A stretch of 64,000 nt of DNA. It comes from Oikopleura dioica. Taxonomy: Eukaryota; Animalia; Chordata. The stretch spans positions 13,268,001 to 13,332,000 of the forward strand of contig OU015568.1 of the NCBI GenBank assembly GCA_907165135.1. Direction: 5' to 3'. The translations under genes and the position numbers were made by a program. The notes under the pieces are model-generated. The model saw only the letters and a list, made by a program, of their open reading frames with translations, was not told where the DNA came from and made no database searches. Shown one piece after another: positions 8,953-64,000 of this stretch (its first letter is position 1; each line of letters begins with the position of its first letter).

Positions 8953-9178
8953 CTGCAACTACGTACTCATTCTTAAAAGCGTATTTGGAGACCGAAATTG
9001 AAAAAGTATTCATGACATGTATTTTTCCATTGAACTTGAATTCGGTGTAAGAGATGAAGAAATGATTAGAAAGATAAATAGAGTCCCGCTAAAACTAAAA
9101 ACGGATGGTTAAAAATAAAGGTCGTGTTAATTAAGGGCTGCAACGAGTCGTTTTTGAATTTCGTCGCTCCAATAGAAG

Positions 9179-10111: not shown

Positions 10112-10266
10112 TCTTGAAAGAAACACAACTTGAAAATTGATTTTAACGAAGTTTATTTTGAACTTTCAGTAATCAGTAGAACCCTCAAAAGTTTCATTTT
10201 CATGCGCTTTGCAGTCCGCGTTTCTCGATTTGAAATTCAAGATATTTTTCATTGACTTTCGTCGAC

Positions 10267-14100: not shown

Positions 14101-14113
14101 ATTTATAGGATAA

Positions 14114-25487: not shown

Positions 25488-25528
25488 TCACTTGATGGAT
25501 CCTGTTAAGTTTACTGAATTCAGATGAA

Positions 25529-31500: not shown

Positions 31501-32691
31501 CTTATTGGCAGAGGTAGATTAGGAGGAATCCCAATTGGTGTTATTGCTGCCGAAACAAGACAAGTAACGAGTCTAGTTCCTGCCGATCCAGCTGATCGAA
31601 ACTCTCACGAAAAAGTAATCACTCAAGCGGGCTCCGTGTGGTTTCCAGATTCAGCTTTCAAGACCGCCCAGGCCATCAAAGATATCGACCAAGAAGGCCT
31701 TCCGCTGTTGATTCTAGCGAACTGGCGTGGTTTTCAGGAGGAATGAAGGACATGTACGACCAAGTTTTGAAATTCGGTGCGATGATTGTCGACGCATTAT
31801 CTGAGTTCAAATCAGGACCTGTTCTGATTTACATCCCGCCACTGGGCGAGCTCCGAGGAGGAGCCTGGGCCGTACTCGACAAGTCCATCAATCCATCGAA
31901 AATCGAGCTTTTGCTGATCCAAATAGTCGATCCGGTGTGTTAGAGCCAGAAGGAACCGTGAAGATCAAACTAAAGGACAAGAACCTCCAGGAGCTCATGT
32001 GTCGCTTTGACCAGCAGATGAAAGAGCTTCAGGCGACTCTCAACAGTGGCAATTTGACAACGGAAGAGATCGGCAAAACATCGGAGCTAACGACTTTGAG
32101 GAGCAAATCTCTTCATGACGCGTACCACAATCTTGCGATTCAATTTGCAGACCTTCATGACATGCCACGTAAGTTATCTTCAAACATCGAAAGTTGAGTT
32201 GTGTTTTAGAAGCAGTTGCGAGCAAACGCTGCTTGACAAAAGTTGTGCCACTTGCAGAATGCCGCCATTTCCTTTACAACCGACTTCGGAGAAAGTTACT
32301 TGAGGACAATTGCGTGGATTTGATTCAAGAAAGTGATCCCGATGTGACCCGGGATGAAGCAATAGCCACACTTGAGCGTTACTTCTTCCAGAACCATCTC
32401 AAGAGCGGTATCAAATGGGACGAAGATATCCCCGTTGAAAAGTGGCTAGCTGAGCAGCTTGAGAATAAAAATTCGCACTTGAACATTTTAATTCAACAAA
32501 ATCAACACGATCAATGTCTGAAGCAAGTGCTCAAGTTGTCGGAGAACCAAGAAGTCGACCAAATTGCGGATATGTTCCAGGTAAACATATACTTTTTCAT
32601 CATGTTATAAATCCTTGTTTAGAGTTTACTGGACTCCTTGTCAGATGAAAAGCAGAAACAAGTCCTCTCTATCATCAACGTCAATCGATAG
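25529..32691 (+). CDS. ACACA: Acetyl-CoA carboxylase (BC-BCCP-CT), with two apparent -1 indels
   Basis: [46 protein letters not shown], biotin site [46 protein letters not shown]. The frame breaks at T runs 31731-31734 and 31909-31912. Confidence 0.97.
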
Positions 32692-37546: not shown

Positions 37547-38913
37547 TTGAGCAAGAATGATCCCTTCAGAATGCAAGTTTGTAAAGATGCACCTGCAGTT
37601 AAACTGCTTAAATTAGACACTAAAGAAGCAGTTGCTTCAGTTATGGCAGAAAATTTGACGACAAGGAAAAATAAAAAGCTCAAAATGGTCAATTTAATGA
37701 AGAAACAGTCGCCGCTATCTCCGGAAAAGCTTGACGATACATTCGCAGAGACCGACTATATAATTGACGAAGAGAAAGGTCTTCGTAGAGTTAGACCTTA
37801 TTTCTTCACTCATCATAAGTTCGCGCTGAAGAGATGGCTTGGCATGTCTGTTTTTGATATGATGATGAAAGAGTTCAGTCTTCATATTTCAACGCCTGAA
37901 AAGTTAAATGAAACGGCAGAGCGAGGCTACATGCTTTTAAACATGGAAAAGATCAACGCTTCGGAGCTCAAAGAAAGGATCATCAAAGACGGGGATATGA
38001 TTTCAACGAAGGACCATCGCCACGAGCCTCCAATTAGAATCGAATTGCCAACAGTCATCGCCGATACTGACGAGTTCTACGTCGTGAAAAAACCATCAAG
38101 CGTCCCAATTCATCCTGTAGCACAGTACCGACACAACTCACTGATCTTCTTAATTGCCCGAGAATATAAAGTGAACTACCACGTCATTCACAGACTAGAT
38201 AGACTCACTTCTGGGCTCGTTATTTTTGCCAAAACGAAAGAAGTGGCAAAGCGCGTAAGCAAAGAAATATCTGACAGAGTTGTTCAAAAACAGTATCTGC
38301 TGAGAGTCGTTGGGAAGTTTCCTGAAAAGGCAACGTGCGAAGAGAGCTTGTTTGAAATCTCTGCGAAGAAGGGTATTTACAGAGTAGCAAAGGATGGCGA
38401 TGACGAGAAAAAAGTAAAGACTGCTTTGACAAACTTCGAGCTTGTTGAATTTTTCGAAGATAGCAACGAAAGTCTTGTTCGTGCAATGCCAAAGACTGGT
38501 AGAACACATCAAATTCGCGTTCATACTCAGTATTTGGGCTTCCCGATCATCAACGACCCGGTTTACAATGATCCTCTGTTTGGGAAAGAACGATTTTGGA
38601 ACGACAACAAAGAGAAGATATCACAGAAGATATTGGGGACCAAAAGGTTTTAAGATTGCCGAGGAAAGTGACACGCCTCAGATGGCTTTTGAAAAGGATC
38701 CGCTCTGGTAAGTTGTGGACTGATTTCCTAAATCATGCGCGTTCTAGTGATAAATGCAGGAACACTCCTGCTGATCCCAATCAACACGACCTGATCCTCT
38801 ATCTTCACGCTCAAAAATACTCTGGCCCGAACTGGAGCTTCGAAACACCGCTCCCTTTCTGGGCTGAGCGCGACTTCAAAACTCCTGAATATTACAAGAA
38901 ATACCTTCTGTAG
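37547..38913 (+). CDS. RPUSD2: RluA-family RNA pseudouridine synthase (RPUSD2-like), with one apparent indel; start uncertain
   Basis: VKKPSSVPIHP, HRLDRLTSGL (catalytic Asp), PKTGRTHQIRVH, GFPIINDPVY, DPLCDKC, LYLHAQKY. The frame shifts near 38648-38651. Confidence 0.9.
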
Positions 38914-43182: not shown

Positions 43183-45166
43183 ATGCGTCAGTTCGTTTTG
43201 TCCCGAGTCGTTCGACCAAAAATTCCATCTCGATTCGTAAGTTGTGTTGAATTTTTATAAATGAGATCACGATACAAGCCCGCTTTTCCCTTCTGGTCAG
43301 TGGGTGGTGCTCGAGACACAAGTTCTTTATCTTTTTTATGAAACCCATATTTTACTGAAAATTAACATGGGGCACTTTAAAAGAATCACTTTAGTTGTTA
43401 CTCTTTTTCATTAGAATTAATTTCAATTAGTTATAAAGCGCAGGAATATTATGGTTCCCTTCAGATATTTTTATATAATCGTAAAATAAGTGAAATGATC
43501 ATAACTAGCCGAGCCACACCTAGTAGACATCACAATATCGAGAAAAGAGCACCGATAGAAAATGATTCCGGTCAGAATAAAGATTTATATTCAGTTCTAT
43601 TACCATTGTGATAGATTGACCGTTTTAAAATGAATTCTAGGCGTCTGGCTTCCGAATCGAGACCGACACCATGGGTGAGATGCAGGTGCCAAACGACAAG
43701 CTCTATGGCTGCCAGACCGCGCGATCGATGAAAAACTTCCCCATTGGCGGCGAGGCCGATAAGATGCCCCGACAGATCATCCAAGTAATTGATAATTAAA
43801 TTATTCTAATTGTAACCGCTCCACAAGGCTTTCGGTTACCTCAAGAAGGCCTGCGCCGAAGCAAACCAGAAGTTTGGACTCGATGCCAAGCTCGCCAACG
43901 CGATCAAAGAGGCCGCCGATGAGGTCATTTCTGGCAAGCTTTACGACGAGGGTCACTTTCCTCTTGTCATCTTCCAGACTGGCTCGGGCACCCAGTCGAA
44001 CATGAACACCAACGAGGTCATTTCCAACCGCGCCAATCTCATCCTCGGCGGCGAAGTCGGCACCAAGTCCCCCGTCCACCCCAACGATCACGTCAACAAG
44101 TCCCAGTCCTCGAACTGCACCTATCCTACGGCTATGCACGTCGCCACCGCTCTCGAAATCAACAACGTTCTCCTCCCGGGCCTCAAGAAGCTCCGAGAGG
44201 CCCTCTACGAGAAGCAGAAAGCTTTTGAGCACATTGTCAAAATTGGCCGAACTCATATGATGGACGCTACTCCATTGACTCTCGGACAGGAATTCTCTGG
44301 ATACGTTCAGCAGCTCGATAACGGAATCGCCCGTGTTGAAGCCACCCTCCCACGAGTCTACGAACTTGCCATCGGTGGCACCGCTGTCGGAACTGGTCTC
44401 AACACTCGAATTGGTTTCGCAGAGGCTTGCTGTGAGGAGCTTTCCAACTACACCGGTCTTCCATTTGTCTCCGCTCCCAACAAGTTCGAAGCTCTCGCCA
44501 ACCACGACGCCATGGTTGAGGTTTCCGGCGCTCTCAACGTTGTCGCCTGCTCCATCCACAAGATTGCCAATGATATGCGCCTCGCTTCTGGACCACGATG
44601 TGGTCTTGGCGAGCTCAATCTTCCCGAAAACGAGCCCGGATCCTCCATTATGCCCGGCAAGGTCAACCCAACTCAGGTTGAAGCTATCACTATGGTCTGT
44701 ACGCAGGTCATGGGTAATAATATGGCTGTCACCGCTGGCGGTATGAACGGTCACTTTGAGCTCAACGTCTACAAGGTAAGTTTTTTATCTTATCAACCCA
44801 TTCATAAAACTCAATCAATAGCCAGTCATGGTTTCCAACGTTCTCCGATCTGCCAACCTCATCGGCACTGCCTGCAACGCCTTTGTTGATAACTGCGTTG
44901 TCGGCATCACCGCCAACGAAGCCCGAATCGATCAGCTTCTCAATGAGTCTCTTATGCTCGTAACCGGTGATAACATTTCCAAGCAACCCCTTTTCAACCG
45001 CTTTTCAGCTTTGAACCTCCACGTCGGATACGATAAGGCCGCCGCCATCGCCAAGAATGCGCATAAGAAGGGAACCACGCTCCGAGAGTCTGCCAAAGAA
45101 AACGGCATCACGGACGAACAATTTGACGCTTGGGTTGTCCCAACCGATATGCTCGGACCAAAATAA
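43183..45166 (+). CDS. FH: Fumarate hydratase class II, mitochondrial
   Basis: Presequence exon [18 protein letters not shown] (43183-43236), [38 protein letters not shown], signature [23 protein letters not shown]. Confidence 0.97.
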
Positions 45167-47265: not shown

Positions 47266-47765
47266 NNNNNNNNNNNNNNNNNNNNNNNNNNNNNNNNNNN
47301 NNNNNNNNNNNNNNNNNNNNNNNNNNNNNNNNNNNNNNNNNNNNNNNNNNNNNNNNNNNNNNNNNNNNNNNNNNNNNNNNNNNNNNNNNNNNNNNNNNNN
47401 NNNNNNNNNNNNNNNNNNNNNNNNNNNNNNNNNNNNNNNNNNNNNNNNNNNNNNNNNNNNNNNNNNNNNNNNNNNNNNNNNNNNNNNNNNNNNNNNNNNN
47501 NNNNNNNNNNNNNNNNNNNNNNNNNNNNNNNNNNNNNNNNNNNNNNNNNNNNNNNNNNNNNNNNNNNNNNNNNNNNNNNNNNNNNNNNNNNNNNNNNNNN
47601 NNNNNNNNNNNNNNNNNNNNNNNNNNNNNNNNNNNNNNNNNNNNNNNNNNNNNNNNNNNNNNNNNNNNNNNNNNNNNNNNNNNNNNNNNNNNNNNNNNNN
47701 NNNNNNNNNNNNNNNNNNNNNNNNNNNNNNNNNNNNNNNNNNNNNNNNNNNNNNNNNNNNNNNNN
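47266..47765. other. Assembly gap (500 N)
   Basis: Run of n characters. Confidence 1.
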
Positions 47766-48570
47766 GACCTGACCAAAAATCTGGGTGCTCAAACATAGCA
47801 AGCCTCGTTGTTGTTGAGATGCTGTTGAGGTGACGCTTAGTGCGCGCCACCCCTGTTTTGCAGTTTTGTCTCTAGAATTGTTGTGCGCGCGGGCGCGGCG
47901 CAAGTCGAAAAGCTCATTCGCGTTAAAAAGCACGCTCGTGCGGCCGATTTTTCGGAGTTCTCCGATGTGACCGACTTAGCGATGCTTTTTATACTTTATT
48001 TAATTCTAGCTCTTTACTCAGTACGGAGCCTAGATAGCGATCAAACCCCGATTATTCATTAATTAGGGAGTTTATTCCTTTCGCGGCAGCATTCATTGCT
48101 ACCAGCGCTTTTTCACGGGGCTCTATAATTCCTTGACCGGTTGAGCCCTCTCGCAAGCCACGGCTTCGCAGAGAAAGTTGTTTTCCCCAGCTTACTGGCG
48201 AATTACAACATTTTACACTTGCCGCTGTTCAGCGAAAAATAAGTGTAGCTCCTACTTGTCCAGCCTGGCGAATAGGTGTTTCGGAACGAGATAGACGGGC
48301 CGGTCGGCCCTTTTTATCCGTTTCCCCCTCGTTGATTTTTATTCGCGAGTTTTCCTCGTCGAAAAATCACTTTTGCGAGAGAGAGAGAGTGTGCTGGCGC
48401 TCGCCTACGCACACGTGCCCGGAGGGGATCATCCAGCCGCCGCGGCGTTTCAGCCACTCAGGAGCCGCGCGTGAGCTCGAGCGGTGACGGTGACTTTTTG
48501 AAAAGCCACTAATTACCTACCTTTTTCAAAAAAGAGAGCAATTTCTTTAGAGAAAAGACCCTTCTTCCGA

Positions 48571-51513
48571 ATGATAGATATACCTCCGGCCCTCAGGGAC
48601 AAGTATGACAGGGATTTTGCAGATCTGCACCCAGGTAGCTGGGATAAAAGACCGGATTATGGGGATCCCCAAAAAGTCCGAATCCCAAGAGGCCAATTAG
48701 ACCCACATACCGACCCAGGTTTCACAAGAGCGGCGTCTTGGGCAGCCAAGAATTCGAAAGTCCTTTCGAAACTCGGTGTGTTTCCAGTGTCGGATTCGGC
48801 TTGGTTGGTCGTGAATTGGGACGTGCTAGATTCGGAAACGAATGCGATTTGGAGCCTGAAACCGGGCAGAGATCCAGCACTACTGTATGCGCTAGCATCA
48901 GACTATTATTTAGTGCGTCTCGAACCTCGGGAGCGAGAAGATCCTCCACAAAACGGGGGGGAGGCTCAGAATGTCAGAACAGACTGGACGGAGCCTGTTC
49001 TCTGCTTCCTGAAGAAGGACATTACGGCGAGAGCCTTGCGGACAGTTCTGTCCAATCTAATCCAATTGGAATTGGGTCCTGAAACCAGGACAACGCTGTC
49101 AGATCTAGTCCTCGAATGCGCAGCACAGAACGTTCACAGGAAGTTCTCTCAGGGCTTGGTATTCTCAGGCTTCGGCGACCAAGAATCGATGATAAGAATT
49201 ATTCTGACCTCGGTGCCCACCTTCGGAAAGAAAAAGTCCTTCATCAAACCAGTCAACGGAGCTTTGAAAGGCCTGAACGGGCTAGAAGGTGATTTTAGAC
49301 AAGCATGGCTGTCATGGCTTCCTAAATCCAGACTAGGACCGTTGTGGTCATACCACAAAATGCTTCTAACATCGGTGCTCACCGATTCTTTCTGGAACTA
49401 CATCACTTGCAAAGTCCTGGAAACTACTCCGGACGAGCTCGAGAAACGAGAGTTGAGACCAGACCCCGAGTGGTGGTTCAATAATTTGGTGGCGTTCGCC
49501 ACAGTAGACTTGCTGGCGATGAGTGAAGAGATCCCGAACTCGCTGAGCCACCCGAAAGACTTCATTGAAGCGATAGTTGCCAACGCTGCGGCAACGGAGA
49601 AGTGGGTGTCGAAAGATACCCTCCAAAAAGCGAAAGTCATCAGAGAAAATCTGACGTTTCCCACAAAGGATCGGGACCGTAAAGGCGAAGGCCTCAGAAT
49701 GCGACTGATTTTGAACAATGCGGTCGCATGTGGGATAGAAAGATTGACAAAATACCTGGAAACAGGACGACTCCTTCCACTGGCGGCCGCTCGGCACCCT
49801 TTTTGGAGGCTCAAAATTAGAGCCCAGCTAGCGAAGAAATTGGCGGAACAGCTAAAATCGCCGGGGAATGGAAAGATGAAGGGCAGACTTGCCTTTAAAA
49901 CCCGCGACTGGAGGCGAGCAATCATGGAGAAAACCAGGACTACATTCGAATTCCCGGTGGATTTCTGCGATTACTCGCTCACGCCTGAAGATAAAGCCGA
50001 TCCGATTTTGTCTCTGTTCAGAGAAGTACTAGAAGGCTTCAAGGAGCGAAAGCTAACGGCGGAAGTGGTGTCCGAGTGGTACAAGGATATTCGCCAGACA
50101 TCCGAACAGACCATCCTGAAACAAAGAAGAACGTTTTGGGAGAAAAACCCACTGGTCAATGATGATTGGGAAACTATCAGAAAGGCCACACCGGACAATC
50201 ACTTTGACTTGGCGCGCTTCTCGTTCGAGCAAGCAGCAAAGAAGAATGCCAAAGGCCCGTTTTCCAAGATGCAACTGACTCCAGATCCTTGGTTCGAAAT
50301 GGTGAAAGATCATGCGTTGAGCAACGCCGACTCAGATCTAGCCTGGCAAATTCCTGACGACTTCTGGGAAGTCGCCGAAGCTGCGGGTAGCAGAGCCTGG
50401 AAAATTAGAGCGGCTAGACTGGCGAAGGCCGGAGCGGTGGGAGTTTTTGCAGCAAAAATATGCAACGAAACGCCGGATATTCCATTAGCGGATCCGCTAC
50501 ATGCAGTGGTAGAATATGCGGCGCAGACGCTCAGACACCCAGCTGAGTATTCACTCAGAGAAGCAATTGAGGTGGTAGCCGACAATTTACGGTATTCGTG
50601 CTCGGAAACGGGCGAGAAACCGTGCGAAGTCTGGAAGAAAATGGAACAAATGGCGACGAGCGTCGATGTAAGAGCGGTCTTCCCGCCTCCAGAGCTGGAG
50701 AACACTCAGAACTCCTTTCTATTGATGCATCGGGTCCCCTCGGCCTCAAAATCAAAGCTTCATTTTCAATGGATCGGAAACGACGCTGAAAGAGCAAAGG
50801 AGTCGATCTTGTGGAAAAAAGAGCATCCATGGAATAAGATTGGGTCAGTCATGACGATCGAGAAAGCGACCGCTATCTTAAACGACCTGGCGGAATTCAG
50901 ACCAACGGAAGCGGCGATGCTACTGAAATCAATGGCTAAATCTAGGCCAGCAGGGGAGGGGATCGTCCTTGTTGCCACGTCTGAACAGGCGCAACAGAAC
51001 TGGGTGGACTTAGCGACGGCTAAGCTACCAAAAGACGAAGAGCCTTCGGCGATCTGGCAGGAAGCGTTCGCTTCGCTAGAGTTTGCAGAACTGTCGTCAG
51101 TTAACAAAGCATCACCAGTGCTTTTGCGGCTAATTGAACACGATGAAAATCGTGGACTCTTCAGATGGCAAAGACTAATCTTCCGGGAGACCGACAATGG
51201 AATGAGATCCATCATTTGGAATACTCACAATCTGGTGGCTCCAGGAAAAGTAAGAATCCTGCGAGACTTTGTCAGCTGGGGAAAGGGACACCTTTCCAAC
51301 CGACACATTAGAAAATCGGAAAAGGAGAGAGAAATCTCTATTCGAGGACTTCGAGAAAACGGACTTCAGACAATGCAGCCTAGGACTAGGCAGAGGAGTT
51401 CTGAACAGACTCGCGTGCACAACGGCAACGTTGGCGAAACCATCATGGCTGGATCTAGTGTCAGTATCAGGTTTGGGCTATCGCCCTACAAAAGGGAAGA
51501 TCAGACCGTTTAA
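48571..51513 (+). CDS. 980-aa intronless orphan protein (element ORF1); true C-terminus may be in the alternate frame ending at 51562
   Basis: Uninterrupted 2.9-kb ORF, Trp-rich and helical-looking. Acceptor TTTCTTTAG at 48550 and AATAAA at 51558. No domain recognised. Confidence 0.8.
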   Translation: MIDIPPALRDKYDRDFADLHPGSWDKRPDYGDPQKVRIPRGQLDPHTDPGFTRAASWAAKNSKVLSKLGVFPVSDSAWLVVNWDVLDSETNAIWSLKPGRDPALLYALASDYYLVRLEPREREDPPQNGGEAQNVRTDWTEPVLCFLKKDITARALRTVLSNLIQLELGPETRTTLSDLVLECAAQNVHRKFSQGLVFSGFGDQESMIRIILTSVPTFGKKKSFIKPVNGALKGLNGLEGDFRQAWLSWLPKSRLGPLWSYHKMLLTSVLTDSFWNYITCKVLETTPDELEKRELRPDPEWWFNNLVAFATVDLLAMSEEIPNSLSHPKDFIEAIVANAAATEKWVSKDTLQKAKVIRENLTFPTKDRDRKGEGLRMRLILNNAVACGIERLTKYLETGRLLPLAAARHPFWRLKIRAQLAKKLAEQLKSPGNGKMKGRLAFKTRDWRRAIMEKTRTTFEFPVDFCDYSLTPEDKADPILSLFREVLEGFKERKLTAEVVSEWYKDIRQTSEQTILKQRRTFWEKNPLVNDDWETIRKATPDNHFDLARFSFEQAAKKNAKGPFSKMQLTPDPWFEMVKDHALSNADSDLAWQIPDDFWEVAEAAGSRAWKIRAARLAKAGAVGVFAAKICNETPDIPLADPLHAVVEYAAQTLRHPAEYSLREAIEVVADNLRYSCSETGEKPCEVWKKMEQMATSVDVRAVFPPPELENTQNSFLLMHRVPSASKSKLHFQWIGNDAERAKESILWKKEHPWNKIGSVMTIEKATAILNDLAEFRPTEAAMLLKSMAKSRPAGEGIVLVATSEQAQQNWVDLATAKLPKDEEPSAIWQEAFASLEFAELSSVNKASPVLLRLIEHDENRGLFRWQRLIFRETDNGMRSIIWNTHNLVAPGKVRILRDFVSWGKGHLSNRHIRKSEKEREISIRGLRENGLQTMQPRTRQRSSEQTRVHNGNVGETIMAGSSVSIRFGLSPYKREDQTV

Positions 51514-52325
51514 CACTGGAAACAAGAACAATTTCGTCAGGAGACCAAATAATACACAATAAATGAGTAGGGAAACCCCGTTTCATCAACAAATCCCCCA
51601 TTCAAGCGTCCGCTATTATAATCTGAAATCAACGAAGACCCACTCACCCTCAGGATCCTGAGATTAGTCATCAAGCCACGCTCAACCAAATGTTACTCAT
51701 CGCGGAGGCGGCACGTGCACCGCGCGCCCAATCAGGTGCGCCGCTCGGCTCAATCGCGCTTCGACTCACTGCCAGCATGAAGTAAATCACCATTTTTCTG
51801 ATCCAAAATGAATTGAAAGAGAAGCTGGCGGCCGTTTTCTTAGAGAAAAAGGTGAGAATAAGAGAAATGTTTCCGGCCCTTAATCTTCTGGTTTCAGAGA
51901 AAGCGAAAAGCCGGAGAATTGTCCGGACAATTTGGGAGCCGAATGGCTAAAATCGAGGCTAGAAGGAGCCAGTCTTCAGTCAGGCGATCGCCTTATACTT
52001 TTTCGGAGTGAACCCGCCCATTCTTCCTTGTTTATACCACTGCTCAAAAATCGCTCGTTTTTTCTGCTGCAAAAGAAGGGGAAACCCGTCCTTTATCTAC
52101 CCTTCTGTGCTGTGCAAATGCGTTTCGGCTGCGATCGCAACCTTTCCTCTTGCTTAAAACCTTCACACCCGTTGTTCTATTCATGCCAGTCCTGGTATTG
52201 TTGATCCTATAGGAAGCTTTTAGTTCTATTATCTGTTCTGTCTCTCTCCTGTAAGAAAATTTCAAGATAATATGTGTAACATGGCTAACCTATTCCCCTC
52301 TTTTCAGATCCGGAATCGGCTTGAG

Positions 52326-55081
52326 ATGTCCGACAAGGACGGGACACGCGAAGCAGAGCGAATGCTCGTCGACCAGCCCATGGACGACCCAGCTGATCTA
52401 CTGGACGAGGCTGACTTCATCGCTGGCTACAACGAGCACAACAGCGGCATCGAGCCCATCGAAACTGCTCCGGAACCGGAGGAATCAGCTTCAGCCCAGG
52501 GAACGCCAGTTCCAATGGAAGTGACGCCAATCGAAGATAGCATCACCATCCACGCGGTCGAAGATGAGGAAAATGATCTTCTAGGTAGGGAATTAGTGGA
52601 GGATGAATTTACCCACCCGTCGGTTTTGTTTTGGCGACTGCTAAAGAAACTGAAATTTACTTCGGCCCAAGTTCTCAGGCGATTTTGGTTAGCATTGAGG
52701 GTGTTCACCCAATTTAGGCTAACTTTTACTGAAAACGGTGCTATTAGAGTCGACAGACTACCGAAAGAATTCCTAATATGGGAACGATTTGCATTCCTGC
52801 TTATCGTGGCCCACGTACAGTTTTTTGAGTTCTATCTGACATTTGAAGGATTTACAATGTTAATCCTTATTTCAGGATCCCCAGGCCCACTGGTGATGGA
52901 TCTTCCGACTAGCGCGGACAACTCAAGAGCGGAAGACATGTCGCAGGACGAAGACGATCTTCTGGCTGAACAGCCAACATCAACTGAGCGGGAAACCGCA
53001 GGAAAGAAGAAAGTCTCGAAACCGCCTACAGCGAATCCGCTCCCAAAGTCGCCACCGGTGGTGATTTCGTCTGACGAAATGGATCATGACCGCCCTGGTC
53101 CTTCGGGTCTCCAGCAACAACAGCAACAGAAACCACAGCGGGCGCCGGAGAAAGTGGCTGAGAAGCCTAAAAAGAAGTACCATCCGAGGAGGATGCAACT
53201 CTGCCCGCCGTCGATGCGCAAAAAGCAGGTGGCGATCCAAATGGCGGCTGGCGAATCGTCAGATACGGACGAAGAGTCTGATAATCGAAAAAGCCGAGCG
53301 GCCGAGTCGGGAAACCGAAAAAGAGCATCAGACGAGGAGGCGAACGCCCACAAAAAGCAAAAGAAGGCGAATCGGCGGAGCCGGCGAATTCTGATCAGAA
53401 TGCCAGTGCCAGCGGTAGTAGCGGCAATAACAACAGCGAGTCAGCGGCAGGCGGCCAAGGTGGTGAAGGTTGGGTCATCCCGAGACGAGACACGGGCCCG
53501 CGATGGCCAACCACTTCGACAGCCACGCCAACTACGACGTCGACGTCTTCACCGACGGCGGATCGAGCTGGAGCTGAAACGAGGCGATCGCCGGGAAGAG
53601 GCCGCCCCCGCTCGATCATTGTGCAGCCACAAGTGAACAATAATCGCCAAGCCGAGGAAAGATACGATCCAGACCTGGCTTGGCATCAGCGTCGCTACCG
53701 TCGGCATTACTGGGATCACAGACACGGCGACATCCAGCGCGCCAATACCATGAAGAGGCTATCACGAGAACTCGTGTCGTTTGCCGATTACGCTGGCCGA
53801 AGGGGGTATGCGAGATACTTCCCAAACAGAACGATGCTAAAGATTGGGGAATCCCATTACTTCGGCCTAACCCCGATCGGGCCTCCTCCGAAGCTCCGCG
53901 AAGGCATCAAGAAAATGTTTATGGCCTTGGTAAACTTGAAGGAGGAAGATATGGGATTACCCTGGCGGGCCCCTCGATTTGACATCTTCCTGGATGAGTT
54001 GAACGAAGTGCAGCGAGCGTACTCAGAGAGACTAACAGCTCTGACGAACGCGTCCCAAGCGGGCTCGGCAACGACTCAAACTCCAGCGCGATCGCGTCAA
54101 CCAGGGGCTGAACAGCCACAACCTTCTACCAACAGACGACGATCGTCGAGCGAAACGGATTCCTTGCCGTCGTATTCAACGGCGATCAGACAAGCCCCGG
54201 CGCGCCGAAGTGTACAGCCACGTCCAGCTTCGCCTTTCAGAATCCGAGTTGAACAAGAAGAGGCGCCAATGGCTGTATCTCCTGTCGCATCTCCCGCTCG
54301 GGATCCGGAGGTCGTCATTACTGGAGTCAACGGAGCTCGAGCGAACGCTCCGGTCGCTGGAACTCGCCCAGATCCGGCTGAGACCTCAGCAAACGCAACG
54401 AACAGTTGGGGCCCGAAAAAAGCACCGAAACCGGAAGAGCTGGTCCCTCCTGAAGATCTGATGGCTGCAATGCCTCCGGGCGATCAGGACCCAGTGCTCA
54501 CTGAGGAGGAGAAGAAGAGAGATGGCTGGTTTTGGCTGATCAGCGACGCCCACTTCAACGTGGCTAGCTTGGGTATGCGACGCTTGTCGCCCAACTACAT
54601 CAACGACTGCGGTGTGCTGGCCCCCAAAGTGACGCCTCTGTTGCGCCGAAGAACGAAGTTCGAGCAGGACCTGCTGGCTCTTGGAGTGACGAAGACCGTA
54701 CACCCGGACAAGCATCGCGCTCGATTGGATGAGTTCATGGTCAAGACCGGCGATGAAAATCGCGTATTGATGCTAGCGACCCAAACTGTCCTCTGCTCAG
54801 ACGACCAGTGGTTCGATGTCATGAGCATGTTGCGCGAATTCGCGTTCAAGGCCTCCCCGGATCGCTTTCCGCTCTTCGAGTTGATGACGGTAGTCGTCAA
54901 CGAAGCCTTCAACCAAGGTGGACCCGCCGTTCGGCGCTTCGCACATCGAGCGGCGGAGCGTATCCTGAAATGGGGACTCGACGAAGCTCGCCACATCAAG
55001 GGGATCCCCGTGACGCTACAAGAAGCTCCTAGCCTTGGGACTTCGTTCGAAGGCGACTACTACGTCAACGCTACGCATTAA
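52326..55081 (+). CDS. Large element ORF2: acidic/disordered N-half plus a folded-looking C-terminal domain
   Basis: The ATG at 52326 follows an acceptor at 52307. Track ORFs 52272..53636 and 53621..55081 join if the A5 run at 53352-53356 is A6 (HKKAKEGESAEP...RSIIVQPQVNNN). Contains an in-frame GT-AG segment at 52585-52875. Confidence 0.65.
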
Positions 55082-55906
55082 TGGACTTACTCAAGTCTCG
55101 TAGGTAATTTCGCCCTCAAGATTTTTTCAGAATAATAATACTTATTCTAGCTTCAATGAAACACACCGGAACGGGAGAGCTCTCTCCAACCTTCACGACA
55201 CCATTGAGAGGACCCTCTCATCTTGACAAAGCGAAGTTCAATGTGACCTTCGCAGTCTGGCCTTGTACATTTCCCCCGAGAAGAAATCAGACGAGCCAGG
55301 TCTCCGTCGTCACGCCCTGGCCAGAGCAGCTTTCCATTTTTTTTTCAGGTAAATAAATAGCTCCTGTAGACGGAAAAATAACGTAAATTTAGTTTTCACG
55401 CGGCCCGAAAGCAGTACTTCCGCTCCCAGAGCAAGCTCCAAGCGATCGCTGTCTACTGCTGCCAAAAATAAGGGGAACCCCTTTTAGAGTACTTTTCTTC
55501 GAGTCATTCTGGCCTTCATATTGAAACTAAATGTTCAAACTCCGCTGTTTTTTCAATCGCTCCTTTTTTCTGCGCCCCTTTTTATACGTGCCTTTTTTCT
55601 CGCCTCTAACCTCCTTTTCCTCCTTGTTTTCATTGCCACGTCTTTCAACTACTCCACCTGCCTGTGCCATCCACATTAGTTCTTCTCTTGCCAAAACTCA
55701 AATCCTAATAAAAAAGGCAAGCCACAGTAAAACCCTTATAAATCCAGAAACTCTTCTGGATAGTGTTTTGGTGTTCCTTAAGCAGGGCTAGAACTAGCAA
55801 GTATGCAGAACTGCAGATAAATCACTATAAATCATGGGCTAATGGCATTATTTTCAGAGAATCGCATCTCGGCACAAGCAAAGTTTTTTGAGCAAAACGG
55901 AATAAT

Positions 55907-56839
55907 ATGCGAGCGATGATCTGCATCTCGTGTGGGAAGGCATACGATCAAGCAAGCAGACTAAAGCTGAGGCTTAAGAAGTGCAAGCACCGATTATGCC
56001 TCCTGTGCCTAGTCGAGAATCCAAATTGGCGAAAAGTGTCAGGCTTAGACTCTAGTGACTCCTCGATCGAGGACGACGACGAGAGACCACGCCGAGTGTT
56101 CAATTGCAGGATGTGCGGGAGCCCGCACCGATTGGACACGGAGGTATTGTTCGGAGAACAGGATGAGCCGGAACCGGCTACTCAACAGGAATCCTCCTCA
56201 AGCATACAAACGCCCTCGATCACGTCACTGACCCCAGTGAGTTCAACAGAGTTCGCAAATTTCCCGGCACCGGGAGAGCGACCGCAGGCCCAGTCAAGCC
56301 CAGTCGAGGGAACAAGCGCCATGGAAAGGCCGACAAATCGAACACAGGCTCAGTCAAGCCCAGCCGAAGGAACGAGCACCATGGAAAGGCCGACAAAGCG
56401 GAAACGCAAGCTTCCTCCGAAACCGAACAAGTCGATCTTTGATGATTTTGACACATTTCCTGAACAGGAATTCAAGGTTGAGATGGTCTTTCACGAACCG
56501 GAAGAGGGAAAAGACGATCCCCCTTATTTCTTCCGCGTTCCGTGTCTCACAAAGCCCGATCCGACGGAAACGTCAGCGGAATCGTTGGTGAGAAATTTGA
56601 TTTGGGCTTTCGTCATGGATGGCAGTTACTCGGACGAGCATATGGAGCCCAGAGAAGTCAAATCAATGTTGAGATGGGCTACCGAAAGAGTGAAGGTTAG
56701 AGATAAAGCCTTACAAAAGGGCCCAAACCCATTCCCGCTTCCGGAATCAGAACTGATTGACATTAGCGCCAGACTAGAACGACAAATCAGTCGGCTGAAT
56801 GACTTCGCCTTGCTAGGAAAGAGGGGGCATGCCACATAA
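55907..56839 (+). CDS. RING-finger (C3HC4-type) protein, element ORF3
   Basis: CISC-x(15)-CKH-RL-CLLC-x(~30, acidic/Ser insert)-CRMC at the N-terminus, then an S/T/P-rich linker and a C-terminal helical region. Confidence 0.75.
   Translation: MRAMICISCGKAYDQASRLKLRLKKCKHRLCLLCLVENPNWRKVSGLDSSDSSIEDDDERPRRVFNCRMCGSPHRLDTEVLFGEQDEPEPATQQESSSSIQTPSITSLTPVSSTEFANFPAPGERPQAQSSPVEGTSAMERPTNRTQAQSSPAEGTSTMERPTKRKRKLPPKPNKSIFDDFDTFPEQEFKVEMVFHEPEEGKDDPPYFFRVPCLTKPDPTETSAESLVRNLIWAFVMDGSYSDEHMEPREVKSMLRWATERVKVRDKALQKGPNPFPLPESELIDISARLERQISRLNDFALLGKRGHAT
56285..56404 (+). repeat. 60-bp imperfect tandem duplication within the RING ORF
   Basis: QAQSSPVEGTSAMERPTNRT / QAQSSPAEGTSTMERPTKRK, period exactly 60 nt. 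Confidence 0.85.
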
Positions 56840-57267
56840 AGGCCGTCCCTATAGAAAAGGGTTTAAAAGCTGAACAGCCTCCGGGAAAAATCCACGATCG
56901 TGGCCCAAAAGAGTGATTTTGAGCAAAATCAAACGTAACGGTGGGTGGAAAACTTTTTGTCCTTGCTTTTGTTGTTGCATCCTTGTGTTTCGTTGGAAGT
57001 TTCCGACTTACGGTAGAATAGAATAGAGTAGAATAGCTAGACGGAAATGAAGGGCGGCCCAAGCGGTCTCATACCAGAAACGGTATTATTCCAGGGCTCC
57101 CCGGAAATCCATAGAAATAGCGGCGCTCGCCGTTTAGTGGTAATATAAAATTAAAAAGTCGAAATTGACTCGAAACCTAACGGATGAACAATAAACAATT
57201 ATTCAACTGTCTGCCAATATATCCACCGACAGGTCGTACTGTGACGAATTATTCTTGTTTTTAGACA

Positions 57268-58511
57268 ATGGCTCGGAGAGTTAAAAAACAACTCATGACT
57301 GGCTCTAGTGGGCTCCCGGAGTTCGCTGGGGAGATAGTTCCATGCGCTAAAAGAAGAAGACTGTCGTAGAGGGAGATATTCCTGCCGAGGAAGACAGAGA
57401 ATCCCAGGAAGAAACGGCCGATCGGCCGGAGCCAGCAGCGGAAGTGGCACCCAACTCTGGGGAACCCCAGACTGAGATCATGGAGGAGAACGACCTCAAG
57501 ACAAAATATAACCATGCAGTGAGAGTACTCAATTCTTTCCTGATCCATCAGCCACCAAAGCCTCACGCGGGGATCTCAGCGGCAAAAAATGTTGCAAAAC
57601 TGGCGGAACTCGCGCAGAAGATGGACAACTTCCTGAGCGGAGAGAACCTGTCGATCGACTTGGTTCAGCGAATGCAGATCCGTCTTGCCGAAGCGATAGG
57701 AGAAGCTATTTCTAGGGAAGCCGGCCTCATTTTTCGCTACATCTCCGTGTCCACGGATTTCTATAAACATAAAAAGACAGCCCTTGAGATTCTGTCTTTT
57801 CGCTTCTCGCCAGAGGATCAGATCATCAAGGAGCTTAAAGAAGGGGTGACCCTTCTGGAAAATATTGCGGGTGCAGGTGGTGAAAACCACGCGATTATCC
57901 CGCTCAGGGAAATTTACGCTTCTCACGCGATGGAAGCCCATCGTCTAATTTGGGCTGAGATCTTGGCAGACCTTGCGACATCCTCAGAAGTGGACCCTAG
58001 AAAACTAGCGGCCAAAAGTAAGAAGGTAATCTTTCTACTGTCGCAAATATTCGGAAACGAATTTACCTTGATTGCGCACCTACAGGACTGGCTAAGCGCA
58101 ATCGACTCGCCTAGGGAAGTACGGGAAACCCCGGTAGATGATTTGGTGAAAACCTTGAGGGATATTTTGTTTCCTCGAAAGAGCGAGTTCATGCCCGCAT
58201 CAGGTAAATACGACGCCTGGGGTCTGGACCAAATCGACCAGAAAACATATGTGCCGAAAGGCAATAGCGCGATCGCGACAAGATTGGAAACGATGCTCGT
58301 CCAAAAGAGGAAGGAAACCCCGCGGAAGAGGAGGAGGAGCATGAAGGCGAGATTGAAGAGCTCCGGAGGACGATGCTCAAACGAGCGGGAAACGCTGCGA
58401 GCTCGAGCTGGGCGGAAAAGAACCTGGATTTTAAAGTCTCGTCGTCCATGGAGGATTATTTCTGAGCTGAAAAGTTCTGTGTTTGATCAGGCCGTCTGTA
58501 CAGTTCTGTAA
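57268..58511 (+). CDS. Element ORF4, in the gag position upstream of pol
   Basis: ATG at 57268 after TTTTTAG. It joins track ORF 57444..58511 if the A4 run at 57349-57352 is A5. Predicted helical; the gag assignment is positional only. Confidence 0.6.
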
Positions 58512-58570
58512 TATACGTTCTCGGATCATACGTTCTCGCATCAAAACAGCCTAACCTCTTCCCATTTAGA

Positions 58571-61065
58571 ATGAACTGGAATCGGCACTCGGTGGCAAGA
58601 GACATGAACGAACGTCAAAAGAAAGGGCAATTCGGCCCACTAAAAACATGGGAAGATATGTACCTACCGCGGCGACCGCCGGACGTCAGGGAGTCTCCTG
58701 GAATGACTCTGAGTTTCCGAAAGACGTGACACCGCCAAGAACTTGGCATGAATGGCAAATTCAGGCCCAGAGGATGTTTGACCTAGCTATAAAAGCGTCG
58801 AACGACGCCTTTCGACCGACCTGGGACTTAATCTTCTTTAGAGAAGAAAGGGATTTTTATGCAGGCAGTTTTAAGGATTTCATCCAGTTCTGGCTGATAA
58901 TCCTAGAGGAATTAGAACCCCCGGATAGATCTAGGGCTTATGCTATTCTGCAGAAAGGAGTAGATGTATTTGAGAATTTCAAAATGATCCCACTGGCAGA
59001 GCCGGTTAAATTTCGATCTAGCACGAATTTTGCGATGATTCACAGCGATCATGAGTCCCACAGGACCATTTTCATTAAGGGAAACCTAAGTAGAAGGGCT
59101 CTAGGAGGCCTTAATGACTCTGACAAGTATGATTCGGAGGACTGGCCGGCACACCGAAAGGTGAAACATCCGATCCATGTGGGGAAAAAGACATAACCAA
59201 CCACTGAGAGTGCGAAATTCGGGTAATGTCACATCCTTTCACGAAGATATAGTGGAAACGCTTACCAAATGGTGCTCGACCGGAGCCCTGACACCCTTAG
59301 CTCAAAAAGCAGAGGATCCTCTGTGCACGTCGGCCATTATCCTGGTTCCGAAAGGGCCAAAATGGCGCGTGTGTTACGATGGTTCGCCCCTAACTCTGAT
59401 GGAGTTAAAAAGCGTCAAATGTATCCTGGATGATGTGAGAGAGGTAATGGCGACAATTCGAAAAGGAGATCTCCTACTTAAACTCGATGATAAATCGGCG
59501 TTTCACCATCTGCTCTTGGACCCCATGTCGAGCCGAATGGCGACTATGCACTGGGGGGGCCTTAGGTTTGCTTACAGAGCGGCGGCATTTGGCATTCCCC
59601 GCATCCCAAGCGAGTATCAGCTTATAAACGGATCGCCGATTAATTTCTTAAGAAAAAGAGGACACATCATCCTCCTGTACTTAGACGATCGTCTCATCAT
59701 CGAACGGCCGGATTCCGAAAGGGAAAGGAAAGCGATCCTCGATGGGTCAATGGCGCCGCGAACAGCTTTTGCGATCTGTGCTCTAGCTTGTGCTCTGGGT
59801 ACGTTCCTGCACAGGGAAAAGTCCACTTTTGTTCCTTCACACGAAATCGAGTTTCTGGGTTTCGAATTCAATACACTTGAGGAGACAATCGGGATCCCGA
59901 GCGGGAAATGGAAGAAATTCCGAGACGAAATTAGAGCGATCCTCGGAAGTAGCCATACTCATTTAAAATCTCTGGAACGCATCAGAGGCAAGTGTGTGCA
60001 TTTCATGTACGTGGAAAGGCGCATGCGCCTTTTCATAAGAATACAAAATGAAGCAATCAAAAAATCACTGGAAACGGGAAACCCGATCATCCCACTTCAC
60101 GCGGAACTCCGAGCGGAGCTGACCAGATGGCTGAAGATGGGGGAAACGCCGAGGAAAGCAAAATGGCTAGAAACGGGAGTGGTCCACCTGAGGAAAGAAA
60201 TTTTCAGAGAAGAGGACCTTAAAAACCGGCTATTGGTTTACACGGATGCGTCAGGCGGCGCCGGCGGCTTGTGCATCGAAAATCTAGGCGAAAAAGAGCC
60301 TTTCTACTGGCCGAAAGGCTTTGAAACAGAAGACATCTTCATGAAAGAAGCCTACGCTATCCTCATTATGCTTAAAAGGAAAGGAAGCCGCCTTAGAAAT
60401 AAGCGAATCCTGATCAAGTGTGATAATCAGGTCGTCTGCAGTGCGCTCTACCACGGCTCAAAAGTGGGTAGGCTGAACAGCCTAATCTACGAAATCTATG
60501 AAGTAGCGGAGGAGTGGAACATTGATCTAAGGGTAGACTACGTGAACACGTTGGAGCAACTGGCTGATGAGCCGTCGCGAACTTTCGACTTTAACGAGAG
60601 TGAAATCACGAATGAGGCGTTCAAAGAAATTTGTAGCTTCTGGAAAAAGACCCCAACGGTTGATGCGTTCGCAACAAGAGAGAATGCAAGAGCGGAGAGA
60701 TACATCTCGAGATATTCTGATGACCAGGCGTTCGCCCGAGACTTTTCCGGTTTACGAAATGGCGCGCAAAAGAGGTCATTTATGCTTTTCCCCCGAGGAA
60801 GATTGCGACCCTGGCTTTCAGGTACCTAGAGGATTACGCGATGAGAAACTCGTGGGCACTGGTGGTGCTGTGCTACGAAAGAGAGCCGCTAGCCCTAGCG
60901 CTGGCGCGTAGGAAAGGCCTAAAAGTTCGCAAGTTGGAGACAACAGTAGCGGTGATCTCGCCAACGCCCAAACGATCGGAAGAGCTGGGATACTTCAAGC
61001 CTCTGAAAGCGGAGGCGTCGACTTGGGTAATAATAAATGAAGCTGGGGCTACCCGAAAAGGCTGA
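58571..61065 (+). CDS. DIRS-type pol: reverse transcriptase, RNase H and N6-adenine methyltransferase (three apparent indels)
   Basis: AGSFKDFIQFW (DIRS-like N-terminus), KWRVCYDG, KLDDKSAFHHL, FGIP, YLDD (59678-59689), IEFLGFEF; RNase H VYTDASG, KEAYAI, KCDNQV, QLADEPSR; MTase VDAFATRENA and, after the T run at 60743-60746, WRAKEVIYAFPPR (60781). Confidence 0.92.
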
Positions 61066-61198
61066 AAACTCACGTTGACTTCGACTGCTCAGTTAGTTTA
61101 TTATTATAAGCTGTCTTATCGTTTTCTAACACTACAAGAAGCACTTGAGTCCGAGTTTCAGATCCTTAATCATTTCTATTCAGAAACGAAATTCGGAT

Positions 61199-62542
61199 AT
61201 GAGTGACTACGACTCGGAAGATGAGAACTTCAAAATAGTAGCTCCAATGGCGTTGAATAAACCGACAAAGGCGAACGCCTCGGCCGCAGCACTGCGAGAA
61301 AAATTCGACCTCTCATCAAGCAAGCAGCCTGTCGACAAAGGGACTGCATGCAGAATCATCGAGGAGAACCTGACGCACCCAATTCTGGGCCCGTTGCTGA
61401 AGGAGAAGAAAAGGACGGCTAATGAAATCGAGCAAATGAAGCCAATTCTACAGCACCTTCAGACAAAAGCGTCAGAGGCTCGAACCCTGCACCTTCTATA
61501 CAACGAAGCGCTGATGAACAAGGAGAAGGGCACAACGCCGAGCGGCGATAAAGGGAAAGATGAGGAGTTGTTCCTTAAAACTCACTCGAGAGAGAAACTC
61601 GTCAAAGAAGTGCGAGACACAAAAGCGGCTTACGACGAGTATGCTTCGACCAAGCAGTTGCTCGACGATCGCGTTAAGAAATTAACAAAGGAAATCAAAG
61701 AAGCTGCAGAACTGCACAAGGTGAAAACCGCTGTCAAAGAAGGCGACCGCTATTATTTGATCCAGAGAAGAACCTCAGGGATCAAGATGTCGGTAAACCG
61801 GAGTCTCGAGGAGGTGGGACAGGAGTTCTACTCCAAGTTTGCTTCGGTGAAAGCCCTGGTAAACTTGGACAAGCGAGACGTCACCCCAATTGTAAACGAA
61901 CTGTTCCGAGTCACTCCACTAGAACTAGTGGATGATCGCATCGTTCTCATGAGAATTCAAGAAAAACTGAACGATGAGATGTTGACTAGGGTCGAGTTCG
62001 CCAGACTATGTTATACCCTGTTCACCCAAGAGTGCCAGGACGAGTTCGACAAGAACTTCCACCAGCTCTGCAACAACCCCAAGTTGCATGCAAAGATCCA
62101 GCTGCCTCTGGACTACAAGCTTCGTGAAGACGAAGAATATGACACCAACACCCATGCTAACCAGAAGCGAGAGCGGGCGGTTAGACATAGGATTAAGTTC
62201 GGGACGGCGACAGCCGAAGAAAAAAGATGGTACCTTAACACTAAGAAAAACAAAGCCATCAACGAGGCAGAGTTGAAAAAGGCGGTGCAGAACAGCAACC
62301 AACGGAAGAGAGGCGGGAAACCGCAACAGAACAATAGGGGCAATCAGAGTGGAGGAAACTCCAACGATGGGAACGGTAACGGGGGCGGAAACGGAGGAAA
62401 CCGAAACCGCAACAACAATAAGAAGGATAACAAGGCTCAGGGAGGAAACTCCAACAACTCTAACAACCAGCCCCCGAACAAAAAGCAAAAGCAGAATGAG
62501 CCAAGGGGACCCCCTAAGCAAGAGCCGAAAAAGGAACCATAG
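61199..62542 (+). CDS. Element ORF6: coiled-coil protein with a basic N/G/Q-rich low-complexity tail
   Basis: 447-aa open frame from MSDYDSED, with an acceptor at 61183. The tail reads QNSNQRKRGGKPQQNNRGNQSGGNSNDGNGNGGGNGGNRNRNNNKK. Confidence 0.8.
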   Translation: MSDYDSEDENFKIVAPMALNKPTKANASAAALREKFDLSSSKQPVDKGTACRIIEENLTHPILGPLLKEKKRTANEIEQMKPILQHLQTKASEARTLHLLYNEALMNKEKGTTPSGDKGKDEELFLKTHSREKLVKEVRDTKAAYDEYASTKQLLDDRVKKLTKEIKEAAELHKVKTAVKEGDRYYLIQRRTSGIKMSVNRSLEEVGQEFYSKFASVKALVNLDKRDVTPIVNELFRVTPLELVDDRIVLMRIQEKLNDEMLTRVEFARLCYTLFTQECQDEFDKNFHQLCNNPKLHAKIQLPLDYKLREDEEYDTNTHANQKRERAVRHRIKFGTATAEEKRWYLNTKKNKAINEAELKKAVQNSNQRKRGGKPQQNNRGNQSGGNSNDGNGNGGGNGGNRNRNNNKKDNKAQGGNSNNSNNQPPNKKQKQNEPRGPPKQEPKKEP

Positions 62543-62896
62543 GTGACTTCGCACAAAGTGTTGCCACTTCTCCTTGTCTTTCTCACGGAAATAAACCGCG
62601 GGCGATCGCCCAACTAGTGCTACACCGGCGAGGACCCTCGCAAAACCTCAGCAGATTATACGGCCACGTAAAGGCTTTTACTGTCCCCGAAATATACCCA
62701 GGGCTTGGTTGGGAACCCAATCAAGAAGGGATTCATTTATTTATTCTCATGTAATCTTTCCTGTAAATAGAATATATCTGGGAGTAATCCCAAGTTATGT
62801 ATTGTTGCCAACAGAGTCTAACGCAACCACTATTCAGAAAACTGTTTCGCTGCAAGCACAACGCGCGCAAGACGAGCGCGAATAATTCGGCGTTAG

Positions 62897-64000
62897 CCAG
62901 CCAAAAGAGAGCCGGACGGCAAGGACGAATGGCCGCCAAAGCGCCCGCCTGACCCAAACCCAATCCGAGTTCCCCCAAAATCACTGGGCTCAGTGAGGAA
63001 GTCTCGGAGGATAGTTGGAGAGGATCCGCTCGATCAGCCCCCTCTGGAAAGCGTTCTACCAAAACGAGCAACACCGGCGAAGCGAAAGCCCCCACCGGCT
63101 ACCGAAACCGCTGGAATCGGGCCTGTTCAGGCCGAAGCTCCAAAGGCGATTGCCTCTGAGAAAGCGAAGCCGAGAAGAAAGAAACCCAAGCCCAAAAGGC
63201 CAAAAGTTCTACCAGTCCCAGCGGAGGATGAAAAAGATTGGTTCGAAGAAGTTCAAGGCGAAGGCCTCGATCTCGTGGACGAAGATGAAGCTTACTGCTC
63301 AGAGTCAGTCTGGACAGACGCTCATATCAGAGTTGCAGTGGCAAGCATGGTGGAGCTAAACAGAGGGAAAACCTTTGACGAAATCACATCAGCCCTTCTG
63401 GATTGGATTGACAAGAATGTTTGTCCACCCAACAGACCAAATAGATACCAGCACTGGTACCAAGTGATACGGGCCGCTCTCGAAAGAGAAAGCAACGCCA
63501 GACTTCCAGGCTCATGCTCGAACGAGATTGTAAGATGGGCCAAAGCGAGGGCCAAATCTCTCGCGGGAAAGAAGCTCTATGAGCCATCACAAGCCGAAAG
63601 GTTTCGCATGTGCGATATGATCGCGCTATGGTCGCATATGCTGGCATCAAGGAAGCCAGTGAGAGTAGAAGCAGCCCTCTATAGCGGTATATGCTTCTTT
63701 ACCGGGGCCCGCGCGATCGAGGTTGGTAAACTCTTTATCGAGGATATCTACGAATCGATCCAAGGAAATGCCTTGGTGTTGCCAATAAGGGAAAGCAAGA
63801 CGAACGTCTTCAAAAACATTCCGGAAAGATTAACAATGTTTTTCGACGACCGTTGCCCCCTGGACTTCAAAGCCCTTTTCTACGAAATCCTGGGCGTCCG
63901 AGAGGAAGGAAAACTCTTCCAACACTGCAGAAACCGCAGAATACTCTGCTACCATTATAGCAAGGCCTCGAAAGAGCTGGGCTGGGCCAGAGTTCCATCG
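62897..64000 (+). CDS. Tyrosine recombinase (3' partial; absent from the ORF track because it runs off the window)
   Basis: Frame 2 is open from 62897 to 64000: GICFFTGAR (Arg 63710), LPIRESKT (Lys 63797), ...KASKELGWARVPS, ending just before the expected H-x-x-R box. The start codon is unclear (an ATG at 62929 is one base out of frame). Confidence 0.88.

Follow-up and report, generated by a model that had tools for sequence, protein, structure and literature searches.

The right part of a 64,000-nt stretch of the pseudoautosomal region (PAR) chromosome of Oikopleura dioica OKI2018_I69 (hereafter the window; record OU015568.1, assembly GCA_907165135.1, with base 1 at about record base 13,268,001) contains a retroelement with seven genes. 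These include a pol gene for reverse transcriptase (RT), RNase H (RH) and a Dam-like methyltransferase (MT), as well as a tyrosine recombinase (YR) gene. A second copy on chromosome 1 (chr1) carries the same seven genes in the same order within one pair of split direct repeats, and all seven are under purifying selection. The mobile unit very probably extends from the left terminal repeat A1 (47766) to a B1-A2-B2 arrangement beyond the window and carries all seven genes. Retrotransposons of the DIRS order have been described as small three-gene elements of 4-6.3 kb (PMC3266345). With about 18 kb and seven genes compared to three in about 5 kb, the Oikopleura element is the largest and most gene-rich of its class that was found described, and the known coding capacity of the class is thereby increased roughly threefold. 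The genome of O. dioica contains members of 14.7 and 18.3 kb, and relatives in ocean metagenomes exceed 21 kb. In addition, orphan protein families which travel with a reverse transcriptase are added, one of 980 aa and one RING-like. To our knowledge, no free-living animal has a smaller genome than this species.

Gene content, sister copy and constraint

The window copy comprises seven co-oriented, non-overlapping open reading frames (ORFs) on the + strand between 48571 and 64000 (Table 1). Their lengths are far above chance expectation and the GC content at third codon positions (GC3) is homogeneous over all seven genes. The spacers between genes measure 62-825 nt, with 640-825 nt between ORF1, ORF2, ORF3 and ORF4 and a tighter packing of the core genes.

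The sister copy on chr1 (OU015566.1, loci L005 and L008) features all seven genes in the same order, and all nine ORF pieces of the window are collinear with their chr1 counterparts at 34-85% amino-acid identity. It is flanked by a dynamin gene and, at its opposite end, by an RNase T family gene, both of which differ from the host genes of the window. A 245-bp A repeat upstream of ORF1 recurs downstream of YR with 245 of 245 positions identical (A1 = A2). Likewise, a B repeat of 46 nt is present in two identical copies, of which B1 abuts A2 and B2 lies at the 3' end, about 170 nt from A2. The termini of this 18,326-bp element are consequently arranged as A1 ... B1-A2 ... B2, which is the published definition of split direct repeats (PMC4157794), and if the 3' end were fused with the 5' end, the internal B1-A2 junction would be formed again. 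A target-site duplication (TSD) was found neither in the flanks of the chr1 copy nor in those of a member of another O. dioica family (L012). Blastn comparison of the left with the right end region of the chr1 copy on both strands returned the direct 245-bp match only, with no inverted repeats in either region.

Between the two copies, the A repeat is 87% identical (window 47766-48010 against L008 9188-9432), as compared to just 66-74% for coding stretches. The conservation of A above all coding stretches fits a cis-acting role. An identity of 87% was also found for the B repeat of the chr1 copy compared with that of a Y-linked copy described below, and no other nucleotide sequences of the element are as constrained as its termini.

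Synonymous sites are saturated between the window and chr1 copies (proportion of synonymous differences, pS, 0.77-0.86), whereas the proportion of nonsynonymous differences (pN) is well below pS in every gene, ORF1-3 included. It is lowest in the main pol piece (0.12), intermediate in ORF4, YR, ORF6 and ORF1 (0.18-0.26) and highest in ORF2 and ORF3 (0.36-0.43), with ORF1-3 being the fastest-evolving genes of the element (0.26-0.43). As pN is low relative to a saturated pS and all seven genes lie inside one terminal pair, ORF1-3 are regarded as belonging to the unit. Within this single terminal pair, all seven have retained their coding function over a long period of divergence, and the accessory genes have thus been under purifying selection long enough for synonymous saturation. 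Frame changes were counted relative to the chr1 proteins and to continuous relatives. Six were found in the window copy, distributed over pol, ORF2, ORF4 and ORF1 (Table 1), with no in-frame stops, while ORF3, ORF6 and the visible part of YR had none and the pol of the chr1 copy had one. Homopolymers of at least five nucleotides occur in three of the six frame-change zones as opposed to 18% of background zones, and some of the frame changes in the window may be Nanopore consensus errors.

A first-pass annotation of this DNA had described a co-oriented array of seven non-overlapping ORFs, including an RT/RNase H/MT pol, a tyrosine recombinase and an extra gene between both, and had proposed a lineage of large YR retroelements with accessory genes to which ORF1-3 might belong. 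The array was recovered as described. The pol assignment holds through RVT_1 in the window itself and through RNase H and Dam in relatives, that of the recombinase through its relatives, and ORF6 is indeed an additional gene between pol and YR, with a homologue in the metagenome family L013 as well. All seven frames are present, with the correction that pol, ORF2, ORF4 and the tip of ORF1 span more than one frame in the window copy as assembled. The membership of ORF1-3 is borne out by the chr1 copy, which holds all seven genes under purifying selection within one pair of split direct repeats, and the proposed lineage gains support from the same collinear, unlinked copy. The annotation had also suggested defining the termini and examining whether the ORFs co-occur elsewhere. 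The termini could be defined as A1 ... B1-A2 ... B2 in the chr1 copy, the window copy providing A1 only. Co-occurrence was confirmed on chr1 for the entire seven-gene order and was incomplete in the Y-linked copy, which has the core without ORF1-3.

Table 1. Features of the window copy, with amino-acid identities to the chr1 copy, and members of related families.
Feature	Position	Strand	Remarks
Scaffold gap, exactly 500 N	47266..47765	.	neighbour, outside the element; left host junction of the window copy unassembled
A1, left terminal repeat of the split direct repeats	47766..48010	+	87% identity to chr1 A repeat
5' leader, A1 to ORF1	48011..48570	+	two short blocks kept in the chr1 copy (blastn, 77-82% identity)
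ORF1, 980-aa orphan	48571..51541	+	64% identity; one frame change at the extreme C-terminal tip relative to chr1
ORF2, ~900-aa low-complexity protein	52272..55081	+	42-49% identity; one frameshift here, single 911-aa ORF in chr1
ORF3, 310-aa RING-like (C3HC4) protein	55907..56839	+	34% identity; holds a 2 x 60-nt tandem duplication
ORF4, 355 aa, Gag position, directly upstream of pol	57444..58511	+	72% identity; without zinc knuckle; one frame change relative to chr1
pol (RT / RNase H / Dam-like MT), ~820 codons	58574..61041	+	70-85% identity; three frame changes, no in-frame stop
ORF6, 465 aa, coiled coil and disordered N/G-rich basic tail, between pol and YR	61199..62542	+	64% identity
Tyrosine recombinase gene, N-terminal ~55%	62897..64000	+	69% identity; open past the window end
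L012, other O. dioica family, PAR	2110-16804; OU015568.1 ~7,996,215-8,010,909		14,695 bp; pol 35% identical to window
L001-L004, ocean metagenome contigs			near-identical in four samples; pol 39% identical to window
L010, metagenome			pol 40%; 1339-aa first ORF, ORF4-like ORF, pol, 418-aa ORF, YR, 312-aa ORF
L011, metagenome			pol 34%; >10 kb of co-oriented ORFs upstream of pol
L013, metagenome			pol 61%; ORF4-like, continuous pol, three small ORFs, ORF6 homologue (E = 8e-33), YR
L006, metagenome			pol 69%; ORF1-like C-terminal region upstream of pol

Encoded proteins and placement among known elements

The largest pol piece of the window matches Pfam RVT_1 (E = 2.8e-8), and the nearest relatives of pol are continuous marine-metagenome proteins of 817-841 aa (~60% identity) together with O. 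dioica proteins. Among 16 aligned relatives, RVT_1 was detected in 15, RT_RNaseH in 13 and the phage-type Dam family PF05869 in 6 (best E = 2.7e-8). The D..A..N and PP columns of the Dam region are invariant. Pfam did not detect the Dam-like MT in the window pol pieces on their own; window pol aligns to the relative P0037 through RT and RNase H and into the Dam region. The RT belongs to the type found in LTR retroelements: the best matches of the pol profile in the PDB were Ty3 and an 'enzymatic polyprotein' RT, with RTs reaching down to E = 1.5e-32. Similarly, the YR frame of the window had no Pfam match on its own, and its relatives are rare, with only 27 among 1.84 billion representatives. 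Phage_integrase (PF00589) was found in 13 of the 15 aligned YR relatives (best E = 3.9e-12), and the YR profile matches solved PDB structures of an integrase, XerA and Cre. Within the family, R, K, HxxR, W and Y show almost no variation, the part visible in the window holding only the first Arg and the Lys. Owing to these domain matches and conserved residues of the relatives, the combination of an RT/RH/MT pol and a tyrosine recombinase is considered real, and the domain identities of both proteins are well established as judged from sequence. An rve or DDE integrase match was obtained by Pfam for none of the ORFs.

The remaining proteins are less familiar. ORF1, ORF2, ORF4 and ORF6 gave no significant match in Pfam, PDB profile or PHROG searches. 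Only two ORF1-type proteins were present in the protein collection, namely that of the window and that of chr1 (P0046), and the AlphaFold2 (AF2) model based on this two-sequence alignment was unusable (mean pLDDT 33.5). Comparison of ORF1 by hhalign with the large first ORFs of L010 and L012 revealed no similarity. ORF3 has the full C3HC4 spacing, and all eight metal ligands are kept in the chr1 protein despite an overall identity of 34%, with the Pfam RING matches being sub-threshold in both copies. A tandem duplication within ORF3 (56270-56389, 2 x 60 nt, 82% identity) repeats a Ser/Pro/Glu-rich stretch which is missing from the chr1 protein. The C-terminal motif of ORF4 is conserved across families, always just before pol (L010, L012, L013), and the CCHC zinc-knuckle pattern occurs in no ORF of the window. 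ORF6 is predicted by AF2 (pLDDT 62.8) to form a long helical hairpin and a helical domain; the N/G-rich basic tail behind them is disordered and conserved in three copies. A Foldseek comparison of the model with the PDB gave generic coiled-coil matches only (best E = 0.26) and no fold match. The basic tail alone suggests a nucleic-acid-binding role of ORF6. ORF1-3 would represent a family-specific accessory module.

By domain content and repeat type, the element is PAT-like within the DIRS order and not DIRS1-like, since the MT domain, the split direct repeats and the YR in the same orientation define this group in a published scheme (PMC4157794). This corrects the first-pass annotation, which had spoken of a DIRS-type element and had compared it with typical DIRS1-like elements. 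The element shares with PAT-like elements (Pat1, Toc3, Kangaroo; PMC4157794) the RT/RH/MT pol with a same-orientation YR, the A1...B1A2...B2 repeats and the lack of a TSD. It is nearer to Toc3 than to Pat1 because its Gag-position ORF has no zinc finger, as in Toc3, which fits the Toc3 or Kangaroo type; the zinc finger of Pat1 was not found here. Nevertheless, at 18.3 kb it is about three times longer than PAT-like elements, and its genes, which do not overlap, number seven and not three. One additional conserved gene separates pol from YR, an accessory module of 9 kb lies upstream, and A2 and B2 are about 170 nt apart. The compact three-gene form of ~4-8 kb therefore does not apply to this element of 18,326 bp and seven genes.

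DIRS1-like elements, with lengths of 3,974-6,283 bp (PMC3266345), belong to the same order and share the pol domain set (RT, RH, Dam-like MT) and the YR. However, they have inverted terminal repeats together with an internal complementary region, whereas the Oikopleura element has direct termini and no inverted repeats. The MT domain present here is missing from Ngaro and VIPER. Some Ngaro elements carry an extra ORF. Complex retroviruses, caulimoviruses and the O. dioica Tor elements with env resemble the element by analogy only, in that accessory genes are added to a gag-pol core. Unlike retro-transcribing viruses and long terminal repeat (LTR) elements, it features no protease, DDE integrase, LTR with TSD or envelope gene, and integration is assigned to a tyrosine recombinase. 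Two further candidates were rejected, namely an LTR element on the basis of the B repeats and the lack of a TSD and an integrase, and a segmental duplication of host genes on the basis of different flanks, identical terminal repeats and saturated synonymous divergence (dS). DIRS-type sequences of O. dioica have been reported before as OdDIRS1, with four sequences in two families (PMC3266345). A description of the full structure, termini or accessory genes of the Oikopleura elements was not found in the literature that was searched, which did not include the original description of OdDIRS1.

Related families and proposed life cycle

A third copy in the Y-specific region consists of a part of ORF4 followed by pol, ORF6, YR and a B-like repeat, with pol and YR in pieces. 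Just upstream of it, on the opposite strand, lies an LTR retrotransposon (L009 265-3686, minus) with a gag containing a zinc knuckle and a protease-RT-RNase H ORF. The Y-linked copy is read as truncated and not as the basic form of the element. Its Y-specific surroundings are rich in short inverted and tandem repeats.

More distant families were found in O. dioica as well as in ocean metagenomes. In the O. dioica family L012, the A repeats measure 275 nt and are 99% identical, the B repeats measure 45 nt and are 100% identical, six ORFs precede an ORF4-like gene, and pol and YR are split into several pieces. On the metagenome contig L001, the co-oriented ORFs cover at least 21.5 kb and include pol, four small ORFs, YR and further ORFs, with two B-type repeats close to the end. 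In L010, the 418-aa ORF shows weak likeness to the ORF6 family (hhalign probability 56%). Other families, too, have co-oriented ORFs over 7-10 kb from A1 to pol. The comparison points to a conserved core of ORF4-pol-(extra ORFs)-ORF6-YR and to an upstream module which varies between families. An internal tandem duplication of ~3.4 kb is present in L006 (1709-6582), where two ORFs, one of 110 aa and one of 186 aa, and a C-terminal piece resembling ORF1 each occur twice.

Following published models of DIRS and PAT elements (PMC7192593; PMC6681497), the full-length RNA would be reverse-transcribed, the internal B1-A2 junction would serve as template for rebuilding the joined ends, and the recombinase would insert the DNA without a TSD. 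The annealing model for A and B repeats is summarised elsewhere (PMC6681497). ORF4 and ORF6 might act as particle or nucleic-acid-binding proteins, a step which is more weakly inferred. Since O. dioica resolves the polycistronic RNA of its operons by spliced-leader trans-splicing (PMC6883708) and most gene starts have an acceptor-like motif shortly upstream, the many separate genes of the element may be expressed in the manner of a host operon. More broadly, it is conceivable, albeit tentative, that a clade of YR retroelements with operon-like genomes of 15-24 kb and 7 to ~20 genes resides in larvaceans and perhaps in other marine plankton. Its core (Gag-like, pol, ORF6, YR) would be conserved and its accessory modules exchangeable. 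Host trans-splicing may have enabled such genomes by making every gene on a polycistronic retroelement RNA translatable, and the RING-type putative ubiquitin ligase might act on host factors. This suggests a testable link between the operon and trans-splicing biology of the host and the number of genes per retroelement.

Alternative readings and genomic setting

One rival explanation is an ordinary PAT-like element of ~8-9 kb (ORF4-pol-ORF6-YR) lying beside ORF1-3 as host genes or as passengers outside the mobile unit. The Y-linked copy with its partial ORF4, pol, ORF6 and YR only, the fast evolution of ORF1-3 (pN 0.26-0.43) and the distant families without homologues of these genes would all agree with it. 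Nevertheless, this explanation is very unlikely given that both full copies have A1 upstream of ORF1, with A1 identical to A2 on chr1, and that ORF1-3 occur in the same order at two unlinked loci with different host flanks. Moreover, 7-10 kb of co-oriented ORFs separate A1 from pol in other families, and the Y-linked copy is degenerate and abuts an LTR retrotransposon. A nested composite, in which a PAT-like element received an unrelated second element with ORF1-3 in its 5' part, is highly improbable: neither a second set of terminal repeats nor a second transposase or RT was found in the window copy, GC3 is homogeneous over the seven genes, and the same arrangement recurs in a copy saturated at synonymous sites, even though the spacers of 640-825 nt between ORF1, 2, 3 and 4, as opposed to the closer spacing of the core genes, could be taken as a trace of such an event.

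The first-pass annotation had further considered an endogenous virus. Such a retro-transcribing virus would have a particle and an extracellular phase, and its accessory genes would be virion or regulatory genes. A multi-gene genome of non-overlapping, co-oriented genes, near-identical relatives assembled from several ocean metagenome samples and the fact that O. dioica carries env-bearing retroelements (PMC5240408) make this idea worth considering. However, searches with Pfam, PDB profiles and PHROGs yielded no capsid, protease, integrase or envelope-like protein, which leaves the viral alternative unsupported, and among the ORFs neither an envelope- nor a membrane-like protein was found apart from one weak hydrophobic segment in ORF2. 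In addition, the metagenome contigs run into flanking DNA after B2 and not into a circle junction, and integration by a tyrosine recombinase along with split direct repeats are hallmarks of transposons. A viral nature is thus very unlikely.

The preferred explanation, a single mobile unit with all seven genes, also has to be measured against several observations which weigh against it. ORF1-3 are missing from the Y-linked copy, and homologues of them were not detected in the more distant families. The window shows A1 only, with B1-A2-B2 expected ~1.9 kb past base 64000 and the right end unseen. Due to the six frame changes, the window copy as assembled cannot encode all its proteins. For ORF4, which takes the Gag position, no capsid match was found, and the PAT-like assignment follows domain content and repeat type. 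As to expression, 8 of the 13 gene starts of both copies are preceded by TT[TC]AG at a distance of up to 60 nt, compared with 12% of all windows and 26% of spacer windows, an excess (P ~0.007 relative to spacers) which is a lead and not a result as the motif was picked post hoc.

The assembly was generated by Canu from Nanopore reads, polished with Racon and Pilon, and scaffolded by Hi-C, with gaps set to an arbitrary 500 bp (PMC8008620). The contig to the right of such a 500-N gap opens at 47766, which is the first base of the A1 repeat, and the contig with the element appears to be tied to the left part of the window only through scaffolding. Either a heterozygous (polymorphic) insertion or a break caused by repeats would be consistent with an assembly break exactly at the insertion boundary (47266-47766). 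The GC content is ~0.50 in the element region in comparison to ~0.40 in the remaining window. No further fragment of the element family was found in window bases 1-47265, and a search of the element region against Rfam revealed no RNA family. Public gene models of 799, 552 and 1272 aa (L007, same record as the window) join ORFs of the element via introns and label them as ordinary host genes, with ORF1 alone being called as it stands and the 1272-aa model extending across the right end of the window copy. In practice, these ORFs are therefore joined by invented introns and presented as host genes in public annotation.

To the left of the gap, the window contains ordinary host genes, including those for an acetyl-CoA carboxylase, a pseudouridine synthase and a fumarase-type lyase. 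In the acetyl-CoA carboxylase, biotin carboxylase, BT, biotinyl, central and carboxyl-transferase domains were seen. These three genes, at 24369-31746, 37547-38653 and 44002-44889, have very long exons. Between 12001 and 16000, the window shows a strong GC skew (+0.34, +0.21), and the GC content falls to 0.37 before climbing to 0.48. The remaining window differs from this skewed stretch, for which a strand-biased repeat or a G-rich tract may account.

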